Assembly (NCBI RefSeq): GCF_001194135.2
Contig: NC_069007.1
Coordinates: forward strand, 21,080,604-21,144,603
DNA from: Octopus bimaculoides
Taxonomy: Eukaryota
Reading direction: 5' to 3'
Length of the DNA stretch: 64,000 nucleotides
In this document: piece after piece, positions 11,020 through 55,146 of the stretch
Position numbering within the stretch: position 1 is the stretch's first letter
Layout: the number at the start of each line of letters is the position of its first letter
Program-made: the position numbers and the translations under genes
The notes under the pieces: model-generated
The model's input: the letters and a program-made list of their open reading frames with translations, nothing else
Database searches by the model: none
What the model was told of the DNA's origin: nothing

Positions 11020-11085
11020 TCAGCAGTGTTTCATAGAAGCCGGGTTATACGTTTGTAGAATATCTTTGCAGAGTCTTTCGAACAT
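11020..11085 (-). other. Z2 upstream ORF MFERLCKDILQTYNPASMKHC
   Basis: ATG 11085 to TGA 11020; follows the TTCTTTCAG acceptor (AG at 11148-11147). Confidence 0.6.
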
Positions 11086-12048
11086 GATACATATTGGTGA
11101 TTCTTTAAAAGTAAAAAATACTCTTTAGCCAATTTCATGTGATTTTCTGAAAGAATAGAAAAATAATATAAGACATAGAATATGTTTAAGAGTTAGATAT
11201 TCAAAAGTATTAATTTATGACATTAAATCCATTAGAGTTCAACAGGATTATTTATTATTGCTGACGGGAGCTGGCACGTCAATCGTCGTAAAGTCGATCG
11301 GTCGTAAGTCGACTACGACCTGCATTGGTTAATGTGGATAATTAAATTAGTGAAGATATTTCTCTAAACGTTGTTATTTTACTTAAATTTTTTATCACCT
11401 TAATATTTACACTTTTAAAATTAGAGTATCTGCGCGCATGTCTTTTATTTCTTTAAAATCATTACATCTTATGACTGATATTTTTCATCGTTATTGTTTC
11501 GAAACGAAAACGAAATATTGTCTACGTCCAAGAATGAAAAATACATTCATATTAAAAGTAGACGTAACACGAAGAGAGGAGGGAGAAAAGAATAACTAAT
11601 GTAATTAATTTAAAATAACATTAAAGAAAAAGATATTAACTGCAAGTTGTAATGATGCAGAGGAACCAACAGCAATAAATAGTTCCACTATTTCAAATAA
11701 ATGTTCCATTTCTTCAGTAGGTGTTATTTCCTTTTCGTTTCAGTACTTCAAATACACGCTCGTATTTTTATACGTTACCAAACATTTAACTAAATTACCG
11801 AATTTACATGTCAGAGATAAAGAGAAATTTTGTTTGAACATAGTATTGATCTGACGTTAAGAATATAAGACATAACAGAAATAACCAAAACTGCAATGGA
11901 ATGTCTAAAAACAAAAACAACATAATTAAAATAACAATATAATTTCGTCTTTGTTTAATGAAATTCTTTTAACTTATTGAACACATCGAAACAAATAGAT
12001 GTACGTAATATGACACATATCCACTAAAAATATTTATATAAATACAAT

Positions 12049-12275
12049 ACTTACATCGAAATATATATGCGTAAAGCCAGTCAACGAGGAAGATGTGACA
12101 ATATATTGAAGTAGTGAGAATCTAAGTCTTGTGGACAAATAACAGCTTCAACAGAATTTCTAGATTTGATTCATATTTTTCAGATCAATATAAAGAAAAG
12201 AATGCTGTTTCTATTTCTTTACACAGTTAATTACCAACCATGTATATTTAATTGGGTTTTCACTTAACTATCAGT
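12049..12275 (-). promoter_or_regulatory. Z2 promoter/exon-1 block with GTAAGT donor
   Basis: Homologous to the block upstream of Z3-Z9; donor at 12054-12049. Confidence 0.6.
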
Positions 12276-12499
12276 TATAAAGTGGAGCCGATCGAGCAGG
12301 ACAGACGTGTACGAAGCAACAACAGGAAATAAACAGAATTGGGAAGGTTTAACAATTAACTGACTAGGGGAGCTGACTCTATTTTCAACATCAGTCTGGC
12401 ATTACTTAATGTTTTATACTAGTGTAGACGTGTCGTCAAAAATAGCGGAGGTTTATTTATGATAGAAAATGACATTATCAAAGCAATGAGAGAAACGAT

Positions 12500-12755
12500 T
12501 AATACATGTCGGATTTTGTGATCCTTTCTAACAATCCGCGTAAGAGTCTGACGGACCCTATCTGAAAGTTTTGGTTTTCTTCCGGAGTTTTGTTTCGACG
12601 AGGAAGTTTTTCCCTCTTTCTCAAAAGCTGTCATTACTCTCGAAACAGTACTTCTTGAATCACCAAACATTTTGCCTGTTTTCGTTACGCTAGCGCCTGC
12701 TATACGAGCACCAACAATTTGACCCCTTTGAAAGTCTGATAGATCAGTATGTATA
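12500..12755 (-). mobile_element. Tc1-family transposase N-terminal fragment
   Basis: TDLSDFQRGQIVGARIAGASVTKTGKMFGDSRSTVSRV..SGRKPKLSDR is a Tc1 HTH region; catalytic DDE part absent. A Tc1-like TIR sequence (TACAGGCGTTGGAAAAAATAATG) lies near 12843. Confidence 0.88.
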
Positions 12756-12927
12756 TACACAGAACTGAATCATTTCAAGAATAATATACGAATGTAACTT
12801 CTCGGTTGAAAATATCGACCACATAATGTATAAGTATAACACATATACAGGCGTTGGAAAAAATAATGCAAACACCTCGCATCATAGCATCATAATATTG
12901 AAATATCTATAAAACCGTCAAAAGCTC

Positions 12928-51345: not shown

Positions 51346-52333
51346 TATATATATATATTTATATATGTATATTATTTTTGTGTGTGGTTTGAATAATATT
51401 TTTTGCAGAGTAATTACATAACACATAAAGACAACGAAGAAAAGTTTGATATTATTTATTCAGCATTACATGTGTTTCATTTCCAAATAGGAATTACAAA
51501 CTTTTAGATGTAGAGAAAAAAATGTAAAATATCTCCTATCAGAAATTCTTCATACATACATATATACATGTGTGTGTGTGTGTATGCATATGTGAGTGTA
51601 CCCTTGGCCAAATATCACATGATGTTTGTAAACGGCCATCATGAGTGTCATGCAAATGCAGTCGTTCATTTCCAGTCTTCTGCATAAAATATGTCTCACC
51701 ATGGAAAATATTTCCTTGCTTAGCAACAGGTGAGGATGGGTGACGGGAAAGGCATCCAGCTGAAGAAAATCCCCATCAATGAATTCTATCTGATCCATAG
51801 AAGCATGGAAAAATGAAGGTTAAATGATGAGGATCATTATATCATAGTGATATGGTTCCTCTTCTGTATCAATGCATTTCTGTTTTAATAATTGATCATT
51901 TTCATAGATTGATTTAGCACGAATAGCTTAGGTTATGGTTATATCTTTCATATTTAATATGACTGTAGAATTAATTCACCATTTTGAAAGAATGATTAAG
52001 GTTTAATATCGCAGTGATATGTTTTCCTTCCTCAGTCAATGCTCTTTTGATTTGTTAATAGATCATTTCAAATGAAAGATTTACTATAGATATCACATTC
52101 ATATAGTTTCTATCATGTGTAGAGATTTTTCTGAGGCACAAGCTTGTCCTTCTGAGGGAATTTTATAAAACAAATGTCACTGTACTTATGGATCCACTTG
52201 TTTTTAATCAAGTGATGATTTTGTGAGAAAATATTTTATTGCAGATATCAAAAAGGTTTATGGTTTTACTCCAGTATGAATACGTTTGTGTGTAGTTAAG
52301 CTTCTTTTTTCAGAGAATGATTTACCATAGATA

Positions 52334-53209
52334 TCAGTGATATGGTTCCTCACCTATATGAATACATTTATGCGTAGCTAAGTTACTGCCATCAGAGAAT
52401 GATTTACCACAGATATCACAGTGATATGGTTTCTCCCCTGTATGAATACGTTTGTGTCTAGTTAAGTTACTGCTAGCAGAGAATGATTTACCACAGATAT
52501 CACAGTGATATGGTTTCTCCCCTGTATGAATTAGTCTGTGTGTAATTAATCTACTGCCAGCAGAGAATGATTTACCACAAATATCACAGTGGTAGCCTTT
52601 ATCTCCTGTATGGATATGCTTGTGAATATCTAAGCTATGTGTACGGGAGAATGATTTACCACAGATATCACAGTGATATGGTTTCTCCCCTGTATGAATA
52701 CGTTTGTGTCTAGTCAAGTTACTGCCATCAGAGAATGGTTTACCACAGATATGACAATGATATGGTTTCTCCCCTGTATGAATTAGTTTGTGTGTAGTTA
52801 AGTTACTGCCAATAGAGAATGATTTACCACAGATATCACAGTGATATGGTTTCTCCTCTGTATGAATGAGTTTGTGTGTAGTTAAGCTACTGTTTTCAGA
52901 GAATGATTTACCACAGATATTACAATGATACGGTTTCTCCCCTGTATGAATACGTTTGTGTGCAGTTAAGTTACTACCAGCAGAAAATGATTTACCACAG
53001 ATATCACAGTGATATGGTTCCTCACCCGTATGAATGCGTTTATGTCTAGTTAAATTACTGCCCCCAGAGAATGATTTACCACAGATATTACAGTGATATG
53101 GTTTCTCTCCTGTATGAGTACGTTTATGTGTAGTTAATCTACTGCGAACAGAGAATGATTTACCACAGATATCACAGTGATATGATGATTTTCCTGCTTC
53201 TTCTGCCAT
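52334..53209 (-). CDS. Z10: C2H2 zinc-finger protein, 291 aa, 10 fingers, truncated by a frameshift
   Basis: ORF ends at CAC-TGA created by loss of TG from CAC TGT GAT; two further decayed fingers follow to about 52185. Confidence 0.8.
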
Positions 53210-53503
53210 CTTTTGAAGAAAAATAAAATCAGTCCTTCAAGTTTTATACATCAATAACTTTTCAAAAATATTTCTCCTCTCACCAAAATCTATGGATATT
53301 TTTCTTCTTGTTTTTATAGTTTATTCCAAGCAAATATAACTTTTGTTAAATTTCTTCTAAATGTGATCTTTGTCAATATTTAGAAATGTTGCAAATACTT
53401 TTGTAAATTCATCAAAATATATTCAAAAGAGAAAATTATCTCTTCGACATTTCAGGCATGGAGGTAAAGTAATGTTTTCTCTGAGGAAAGATTTTACTGT
53501 AAT

Positions 53504-53569
53504 TCAGCCATGTTTCATAGAAGCCTGGTTATATGTTTGTAGAATATCTTTGCAGAGTCTTTCAAACAT
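53504..53569 (-). other. Z10 upstream ORF MFERLCKDILQTYNQASMKHG
   Basis: ATG 53569 to TGA 53504; acceptor AG 53635-53634; upstream donor 54558-54553. Confidence 0.6.
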
Positions 53570-55080
53570 GATACATATTGAAGATTCTTTAAAAGTAAAA
53601 AAAAATACTTTTTAGCCAATTTCATGTGATTTTCTGAAAGAATAGAAAATTAAGATAAGACATAAAGTATGTTTAAAAGGTAGATATTCGTGCAAATTTA
53701 CGACAATTCTATTTTGCTAAATTGTAGAAGTATTAAACTTATTTAATCTCACCAGTTTTAAGAAGTTTCTATCTACATATGGGAATACATGCGATTATGA
53801 AAAAAATTGTCTTTTAATTTTTCCAATTTTATTTTTAAATCGAAATTTAAAATACTCACAGTAGAATTTTTTTGGCTTAAATCCCAACAAGAGAGACAGA
53901 GAATGTAGGAGGGTATCAGGTGGTTACGAAATGTTTGAAAAATCACATAGTTTTTGTTTGTTTGTTTGCTGCAAAACCGTATGAATTCTTGTGTGTAGCA
54001 CACGTATGTACAAAAATTTTCTGAAAATTCCCCCAAAATAAAAAATATGTGAGAAAGGATTATATTGGGTGCTTAAAGCAACATTCTGCCAAATTGTTTT
54101 TTATTGTGAGTTGTAATGATGCAGAAGAACCACCAGAAATAAAGATTTCCTGTTTCAAATAAAAGCCGTTCCATTTCTTCTGTATACGATATTTACTTTT
54201 CGTTTCAGTATTTCAGGTGCACACTCGTATTTTTATATATTCCCCATTTTCTTACACCAATTATATCGTACTTACCCCGCATTTAACTTTATAGTCAAAT
54301 TTACACGTCAGAAAGAAAGAGAAATGTTATCTAAACAAGATATAGATCTGACGTTAACGAATATAGGAAATAACTAAAAGTGCAATGAAATGTCTAAAAG
54401 AAAACGATAATGAAAGTATTAAAAGAACAACCTTACTTTCATATAATTTCGTCTTTGTTTAGTGAGATTCTTTCTTTTAACTTATTCAACACATGGAAAC
54501 AATCAGATATGTCATGACACATATATAATAGAAATGTTTATATAAATATAATACTTACATAGTAATATATATTTATACGTATATAGATACTATTCAAGAA
54601 TAGTTGTACCGGTGTACGCACTCGCACATCCGGACTAGCAAGTCGTGACTAGTGGATCCAACGACTACCTAGGGCAAGTGTGCGTCATGCGCAAAACATG
54701 TATGAGAGTTTTTTTCTAAACAAAGTAAATAAATTATACACTACCTATTTTTGGTAAACAGTCCATTATTAACATCTATATTGGTATGTATGTGTGTGTG
54801 TGTGTGTGTGAGAGAGAGAGAGAGAGAAAGCAATGTCCAGGAGTTGCTATTATAATTATTGTATCTGCTCATAATTTATTAACTTTTGGAAAAGTTCACA
54901 TGCAGGTTGGTTTACTTCTACAATTCATTAAAACAGAAATGACATAAATTTGCATTTTTGAATATCTACCTTTTAAACATATTCTATGTCTTATATTATT
55001 TTTTTGTATTCTTTCAGAAAATCACATGAAATTGGCTAAAAAGTATTTTTTTTACTTTTAAAGAATCACCAATATGTATC

Positions 55081-55146
55081 ATGTTCGAAAGACTCTGCAA
55101 AGATGTTCTACAAACGTATAACCAGGCTTCTATAAAACGTTGCTGA
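55081..55146 (+). other. Z11 upstream ORF MFERLCKDVLQTYNQASIKRC
   Basis: ATG 55081 to TGA 55146; acceptor AG 55016-55017. Confidence 0.6.

Follow-up and report, generated by a model that had tools for sequence, protein, structure and literature searches.

The conserved 66-nt upstream frame of an octopus zinc-finger array is probably a passenger in a non-coding leader segment

Introduction

Why should neighbouring zinc-finger genes carry the same 21-codon reading frame upstream of their coding sequences? The question is raised by a 64,000-nt stretch of the Octopus bimaculoides genome (NC_069007.1, positions 21,080,604–21,144,603; hereafter the window), which lies at ~21.08–21.14 Mb of CM046627.1 and contains a tandem array of finger-only C2H2 genes. 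In the original prediction for this locus, the upstream open reading frame (uORF), whose peptide begins with MFER, was seen either as a family-wide translational gate or as a micropeptide co-expressed with the finger proteins, and its start, stop and length were regarded as constrained. Our analysis points elsewhere: the 66-nt frame is probably a passenger in a strongly conserved non-coding 5' leader segment of a young tandem array. As a selected element, the MFER frame has no signal of its own.

Short upstream frames are common. About half of all animal mRNAs carry at least one uORF; these mostly lack peptide conservation and, if active, are mild dampeners of translation. More elaborate systems exist, such as the conserved-peptide uORFs (CPuORFs) of plants, for instance the sucrose-control uORF of bZIP11, or the multi-uORF gates of GCN4 and ATF4, which operate by delayed reinitiation. 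Furthermore, tandem duplicates in vertebrate KRAB-ZNF clusters share exons of the 5' untranslated region (5'-UTR), and regulated cassette exons are known to have conserved flanking intron sequence.

For C2H2 genes, octopus-specific expansion clusters of 104–495 members, mostly from O. bimaculoides, have been described in a report that makes no mention of UTRs, exons or uORFs (PMC12513265). Literature searches turned up no paper that combines octopus, upstream ORFs and zinc fingers, and the putative leader exon that we describe in the following appears to be new to the literature that we could search.

Results

A 66-nt frame in ten copies

The window holds 11 C2H2 finger units. A blastn search of the window with a 300-nt unit yielded ten copies with 84–100% identity and two weak matches, and nhmmer found no further copies beyond these ten and two divergent ones, here referred to as Z1-type. 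Each of the ten copies contains a TGA-closed 66-nt frame without indels, which opens with ATG in nine of them. Its peptide follows the predicted pattern MFER(L/P)(C/W)(K/R)D(I/V)LQTYNxAS(I/M)Kxx, and its ends match the originally predicted start and stop positions exactly in all ten. In the remaining copy, Z21 (Z4 in the original prediction), the start reads ATA, with the following base also changed (T>C), and is rescued, as proposed, by an in-frame ATG at 21070 that leads to the same TGA after 39 codons. The frame starts 70–73 nt downstream of the start of the motif TTCTTTCAG, the predicted conserved acceptor, which is indeed invariant in all ten copies.

The putative leader exons that harbor these frames are located on the plus strand at 15030–15163 (Z15; 134 nt; uORF 15092–15157), 21062–21195 (Z21; frame 21124–21189, with ATA at 21124 and TGA at 21187–21189), 26028–26160 (Z26; uORF 26089–26154), 28832–28964 (Z28; uORF 28893–28958), 34017–34150 (Z34; uORF 34079–34144), 39987–40121 (Z40; 135 nt; uORF 40050–40115), 46700–46833 (Z46; uORF 46762–46827) and 55018–55152 (Z55; uORF 55081–55146). 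On the minus strand, they are found at 11014–11146 (Z11; 133 nt; uORF 11085–11020; acceptor TTCTTTCAG at 11155–11147, donor ACT|GTAAAA) and 53498–53633 (Z53; 136 nt, with a run of nine T; uORF 53569–53504). The uORFs of Z34 and Z46 are identical in sequence.

In nine of the ten units, the 66-nt ATG-to-TGA frame lies 129–304 nt of genomic distance upstream of the main ATG on the same strand; in Z21, the ATG at 21070 is used. The segment between exon and main ATG is ~150 nt shorter in Z26 than in most copies. The nearest run of undetermined bases is at least 179 nt away from any putative exon, and each frame is therefore continuous sequence. Linkage and distance to the main ORF are not verifiable for Z34 and Z46, where a gap at 34329–34476 precedes the main ATG and a 10-N gap at 47014–47023 covers it, respectively.

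Conservation of the surrounding block

The frame is embedded in a conserved block of ~180 nt. Averaged over the 28 pairs of eight copies, pairwise identity forms a plateau of 0.87–0.96 that extends from ~25 nt before the CAG of the putative acceptor to ~25 nt past the uORF stop; beyond the plateau, it falls to ~0.5 in either direction, and it is 0.81–0.84 where the finger coding sequence (CDS) begins. The Jukes–Cantor (JC) distance is 0.33 in the upstream non-coding sequence, 0.05 in the last 25 nt before the CAG, 0.07 in the leader from the CAG to the MFER ATG, 0.11 in the uORF, 0.17 in the next 27 nt, 0.19–0.20 in the downstream non-coding sequence and 0.29 in the first 150 nt of the CDS. 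As it is lowest before the ORF, constraint peaks upstream of it. Variable columns make up 15 of 66 positions in the uORF and 13 of 61 in the leader, and the gapped fraction is 0–0.02 inside the block versus 0.26–0.38 outside. Likewise, the indel-free zone of few substitutions runs from ~25 nt before the acceptor to ~25 nt past the stop, that is, beyond both ends of the ORF. Together with ~25 nt on each flank, the exon changes at about one third of the rate of its flanks, and all codon positions are equally conserved, which argues for a constraint on nucleotides.

The original prediction had contrasted the constancy of the frame with the variable lengths of the adjacent T-run and the downstream leader. 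The frame region is better kept than its flanks, but these two comparators are a slippage-prone homopolymer (6–9 T in nine copies, interrupted as TGTTTT in Z26) and a probable intron. As for a structured RNA, RNAalifold yields −7 kcal/mol over 138 columns with no pair changed on both sides, and the window has no Rfam matches. Only one fold recurs, the 7-bp A-U hairpin AAAAGTA-(T)n-TACTTTT (e.g. 40005–40030), in which the variable T-run forms the loop; one copy shows a G-U-compatible change in this palindrome, and two copies break a pair.

Is the frame itself selected?

Among dinucleotide shuffles of the exon, 18% hold a closed ATG-initiated ORF of at least 21 codons, and upstream ATGs (uATGs) are not enriched, their number being that expected from the shuffles. 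Single substitutions would disrupt the ORF by start loss, stop loss or a new stop in 13% of cases; ~2 such changes are expected among the observed alleles, and one is seen. When the patterns of the 15 variable columns are permuted, at least nine of ten copies stay intact with P = 0.23, and all ten do so in 14% of permutations. Variation from the outer flanks, transplanted onto the ORF in windows of 66 columns, leaves 0–3 of ten copies intact, and none of 92 windows reaches nine. By contrast, variation from the adjacent non-ORF part of the block, with the gapped T-run columns left out, leaves 5–10 copies intact, and 3 of 14 windows reach at least nine. The stretch is therefore protected when compared with the flanks, but its degree of protection does not exceed that of the non-ORF sequence right beside it. 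Accordingly, the expectation that indels and stops would be rarer in the frame than in flanking non-coding sequence holds for the copies in the window, but they are not rarer than in the rest of the same block. Given the permutation result and the higher conservation outside the ORF, the proposal that start, stop and length are themselves the constrained features is not supported.

These results bear most directly on a selected translational gate, i.e. on the possibility that selection keeps the MFER uORF in existence and fixes its position and length because its translation controls access to the finger ORF. All copies have 6 nt between the stop and the putative donor, and the main ATG, where visible, follows 0–5 nt after the putative acceptor, such that the uORF would end ~6–11 nt before the main AUG in a spliced mRNA and reinitiation would be disfavoured. 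A gate would also fit the nine intact frames, the rescue of the tenth by an in-frame upstream ATG and a stretch that is far better kept than its flanks. Nevertheless, we consider it unlikely, as the intactness of the frame is not significant given the variability of the exon itself, conservation is higher outside the ORF, ATGs are not enriched, the MFER ATG is lost in Z21, and the geometry invoked is that of predicted splice sites.

The start codons of the leader add to these objections. There are two to five uATGs per copy, and the MFER ATG is the third in line. The first (uATG1, ATGAAATTGG) is present in eight of ten copies (in Z15, for example, it is ATA), with C at −3 in seven of them and T in Z40; the length of the T-run determines whether its frame comprises 11, 35, 36 or 39 codons. 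The second (uATG2, ATGTATCAT) is present in all ten with A at −3, and its frame comprises 4 or 15 codons, as set by a C/T site. The MFER start follows as uATG3, 7 nt past uATG2, with T at both −3 and +4. Among the three common starts, general scanning and Kozak rules would predict it to be favoured least. A gate would thus have a weak start context and be preceded or overlapped by two earlier uATGs with copy-specific frames, even if the variable length of the overlapping uATG2 frame, next to the fixed length of the MFER frame, speaks in its favour. Four copies contain an extra uATG, aaacATG(G/C), at 15150, 28951, 40108 and 53511 (minus strand), with A at −3 in all and, at +4, G in Z15, Z28 and Z53 and C in Z40. 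The frame that this uATG opens has no stop before the putative exon end and, after splicing, would continue into the finger exon. In Z11, additional uATGs are found at 11138, 11092 and 11034 (minus strand). The leader is uATG-rich, and its layout varies between copies; a generic dampening of finger-ORF translation by such a leader is plausible.

The divergent Z1-type homologue of the leader exon, 118 nt in length, offers a further argument against a gate. It is found at 2975–3092 on the plus strand (nhmmer E = 9e-10) and again, 100% identical and inverted, at 66–183 on the minus strand. It aligns with the main type from the pyrimidine tract and the acceptor TTATTTCAG through the donor GAG|GTAAAATATTTCC, with both putative splice sites kept, but differs from it by seven indels. 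At the position of the MFER start, it reads ATC TTT TAA, in agreement with the original observation that the divergent exon lacks this ATG, and its only uATG is ATGGAATAA (ATG GAA TAA). The Z1-type finger array is intact. This apparent loss of the ORF matches what would be predicted for a passenger.

As a side observation, the Z1-type copies are, together with 76 nt upstream, 100% identical over 207 nt in inverted orientation (41–268, minus strand, and 2890–3096, plus strand), and each abuts an assembly gap. The pair is explained either by an assembly artefact or by a palindromic duplication that happened very recently.

A putative leader exon and a second upstream module

Judging from its sequence signals, the block is most likely an internal 5'-UTR exon of 133–136 nt together with its splice signals. 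Such an exon would start after an invariant pyrimidine tract and TTCTTTCAG and end at ACW|GTRAAA, 6 nt past the uORF stop, to be followed by an intron of 0.12–0.37 kb and then by the finger exon. At the 5' edge, the acceptor context CTTATATTATTTTTCTATTCTTTCAG provides the pyrimidine tract and AG; at the 3' edge, the GT of the putative donor is invariant in all ten copies and aligns with GAG|GTAAAA of the Z1-type. Every visible main ATG has GATTTTATTTTTCYTG upstream and an AG 0–5 nt before it. The edges of the conservation plateau coincide with these putative splice sites. When the annotated proteins of the window were looked up, no Logan or RNA contigs came back, and the sole match was the locus in the window itself.

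A second conserved 5' module, block A, is found 0.3–1.3 kb upstream of the leader exon in nine of the ten units, while Z55 is without its own. In Z40, it spans 37707–38661 (plus strand); the other copies lie at 11703–12346 (minus strand), 13217–13761, 19985–20702, 25007–25480, 27484–28308, 32772–33708, 44319–46040 and 54151–54571 (minus strand). It features an invariant donor-like ATGTAAGTAT, a TATA-like GT(A/G)TAAAA(A/G)TA and a conserved ACTGAAACGAAA, and may hold a promoter and/or an earlier exon.

Alternatively, the leader block itself could be a core promoter with a first exon, in which TATATTA, ~20 nt before the CAG, would serve as TATA box and transcription would start a few bases downstream. 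Its conservation would then reflect promoter function at the DNA level, and the ORF would still be a passenger in the leader. Several observations are compatible with this: TCTTATATTATT is the best-conserved stretch, even in comparison with the Z1-type copies, conservation peaks at −25 to −1 (JC 0.05), and Z55 has no block A. However, a pyrimidine tract with an invariant CAG and a conserved GT 133–136 nt further on constitute a classic exon signature. Moreover, conservation drops within ~75 nt upstream, a shorter span than would be expected of a promoter, and nine of ten units have block A, with its TATA-like and donor-like motifs, as a separate module upstream. A promoter at this position thus appears doubtful.

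The putative leader exon could also be a regulated cassette. Its inclusion would add clustered uATGs, the frames of which all end inside the exon, with the MFER stop 6 nt before the junction and ~6–11 nt from the main AUG, and would thereby act as a family-wide on/off switch for the translation of dozens to hundreds of finger genes. We regard such a switch as quite unlikely.

Exchange between copies

The ten copies do not represent ten independent trials, as 86 of 210 informative site pairs within the ~180 nt show all four gametes. Z26, for instance, combines the Z28/Z40 and Z21/Z34 haplotypes in a mosaic, and exchange between paralogues is likely on these grounds. It could be argued that such gene conversion, without any selection, is all that keeps the stretch alike and that the ORF is its by-product. 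We find this very unlikely: the plateau in the 28-pair average has sharp boundaries at the putative splice sites, which unselected tracts would not share, the much more divergent Z1-type retains the putative acceptor and donor as well, and some of the homoplasy falls on CpG sites (TTCGAA, ACG, CGT), where recurrent mutation is expected.

The homoplasious sites at +5, +35 and +58 from the MFER ATG show changes from CpG to TpG or CpA (TTCGAA/TTTGAA, ACG/ACA, CGT/CAT), which suggests recurrent methyl-CpG decay in the leader-exon copies.

The encoded peptide

Over all pairs, the ratio of non-synonymous to synonymous polymorphism (pN/pS) is 0.80, and the derived alleles comprise 4 synonymous and 11 non-synonymous changes (binomial p = 0.52 versus neutrality). 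The latter are L>P, C>W, K>R, I>V, P>H/L, I>M, H>R, C>G/S and F>L. The original remark that many substitutions change amino acids was therefore correct, and the same numbers speak against its micropeptide. A functional micropeptide, with the 21-residue MFERLCKDILQTYNPASIKHC produced together with the finger proteins, is extremely improbable: the frame is open in nine to ten of ten copies, but 11 of 15 derived alleles alter a residue, with exchanges such as L>P, C>W, C>G/S and H>R, the Z1-type paralogue lacks the peptide, the start context is poor and, as weak evidence, the gene-position collection that we searched lists no called product corresponding to the 39-aa extended form.

Two other candidates were rejected. 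The block is not a coding exon, since none of the three frames stays open across the exon and T-run length alters the frame from copy to copy. A fusion of the uORF to the finger ORF by read-through or editing was dismissed in view of the spacing of 6 + 0, 2 or 5 nt, depending on the copy, and the neutrality of the peptide.

The finger array and its surroundings

Window positions are converted to CM046627.1 (GCA_001194135.2) by adding 21,080,603, and loci fetched in this way are identical to the window. On the plus strand, the finger ORFs are located at 15456–16832 (Z15; start counted at MSEELGKS), 21482–22771 (Z21; 429 aa; a single-exon CDS in the GCA_001194135.2 annotation), 26284–27075 (Z26; 263 aa), 29242–30195 (Z28; 317 aa), 34520–35893 (Z34; 457 aa; main ATG at 34520) and 40420–41793 (Z40; 457 aa), followed by the finger arrays at 47024–48515 (Z46; start lost within the 10-N gap) and 55308–56334 (Z55). 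The minus strand carries the ORFs at 9533–10750 (Z11; 405 aa; pyrimidine tract and AG precede the ATG) and 52334–53209 (Z53; 291 aa). In Pfam searches with the Z11, Z21 and Z34 proteins, only finger families were found, plus spurious overlaps with other zinc-binding models, and no KRAB, SCAN or BTB domain, so the original description as effector-less finger proteins is appropriate.

It was less so in calling all ten units complete. All ten frames are present, but the arrays of Z53 and Z55 share a frameshift, reading CACTGATATC where CACTGTGATATC is expected; it terminates the Z53 ORF and lies at 56004–56020 in Z55. Their uORFs are intact nonetheless. The two units are arranged head-to-head, and the common 2-nt deletion (CCATATCACTGATATCT; 52329–52345, minus strand, and 56004–56020, plus strand), which frameshifts one finger, is unique to them within the window; further downstream, the frame of Z53 is broken at additional places. 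Both units could be pseudogenes, or they could belong to an inverted duplication.

The gene models of GCA_001194135.2 fuse neighbouring units, namely Z26 and Z28 (26284–30195; 522 aa) and, across a gap, Z40 and Z46 (40420–48515; 954 aa). These fusions are probably mis-annotations. Long TA-rich and CA-rich microsatellites adjoin several assembly gaps (17650–18170, 36180–36700, 42500–43020) and are probably the reason why the assembly breaks there.

A fragment of a PIF1 helicase, which we take to be Helitron-derived, lies at 30989–31651 (plus strand; Pfam PF05970) and shows 92% DNA identity to a copy on CM046606.1. Its closest relatives are found in O. bimaculoides and O. sinensis; around these homologues, neither finger genes nor the leader exon were found. 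An ORF at 6442–7371 (minus strand) presumably corresponds to a Helitron N-terminal region, which it resembles without a Pfam match. The ORF at 12419–12760 (minus strand), situated between the head-to-head units Z11 and Z15, is presumably a Tc1/mariner-like N-terminus, with weak HTH_23 and HTH_32 matches under the Pfam cut-offs.

In the search for family members beyond the window, a whole finger protein mainly retrieved generic vertebrate ZNFs, which swamped the results, and a profile of the family-specific N-termini gave no candidate. The finger proteins of the window had no match in the protein collection searched, and one that was checked is not on record as a gene product. Likewise, a metagenome scan with the exon core gave 0 matches.

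Discussion

The MFER frame is thus best explained as a probable passenger. It would have arisen by chance in an ancestral AT-rich exon, and it is intact in nine of ten copies because this exon changed so little. The constraint on the exon may stem from splicing signals or enhancers, or from a regulatory element at the RNA or DNA level, and exchange between paralogues would help to keep it conserved. The leader segment, taken as a unit, is probably regulatory, given that it is better protected than its surroundings and precedes every finger ORF. It would probably lower the translation of the finger ORFs in the generic manner of uATG-rich leaders.

Several points weigh against this explanation. 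The exon boundaries, and even the transcription of the block, are deduced solely from the sequence. Measured against the general metazoan consensus, ACW|GTRAAA makes a weak donor, and seven copies contain a stronger-looking G|GTGAGA ~70 nt before the main ATG (Z26 lacks it, and Z34 and Z46 carry mutated versions). The ORF is lost in one divergent lineage only, the Z1-type. Furthermore, ten non-independent copies offer low power, so that a modest ORF-specific constraint could hide in the constraint on the entire exon. Finally, the constant length of the MFER frame, compared with the 4 or 15 codons of the overlapping uATG2 frame, is mildly unexpected for a passenger.

The MFER frame resembles ordinary animal uORFs in being a short frame before the main ORF, without peptide selection, accompanied by several overlapping uATGs of weak or variable context, and with an occurrence that fits composition. 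It differs from them in that the same uORF is present in ten paralogues, which is due to recent duplication and a slowly changing exon rather than to independent conservation. With the CPuORFs and the GCN4 and ATF4 systems, it shares the position before a transcription-factor ORF and, under the proposed splicing, a stop near the main AUG. Unlike in these systems, however, the peptide is not conserved (pN/pS 0.80), the accompanying uORFs vary in number, frame and length, and a divergent paralogue lacks the uORF. The array also resembles vertebrate KRAB-ZNF clusters, as it consists of tandem C2H2 genes with their fingers in one exon and, as predicted here, a short non-coding exon upstream; similar to regulated cassette exons, the conservation plateau spans this exon and tens of bases of flanking intron. 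In contrast to KRAB-ZNF genes, the octopus genes have no effector domain, and conservation is higher in their putative leader exon than where the CDS begins.

As a uORF, the frame carries little weight, given that short, non-conserved uORFs are found everywhere. The main gain is the observation that each unit of this octopus-specific array carries a leader segment of ~135 nt with flanking signals, which exceeds the coding start in conservation and the surrounding non-coding DNA about threefold. Should this segment indeed prove to be an exon common to the units, it would offer a candidate handle on the co-regulation of a large, recently expanded transcription-factor family, be it via splicing choice, translation or a DNA-level element, and would serve as a convenient probe for cataloguing family members that are merged or missed in the current annotation.

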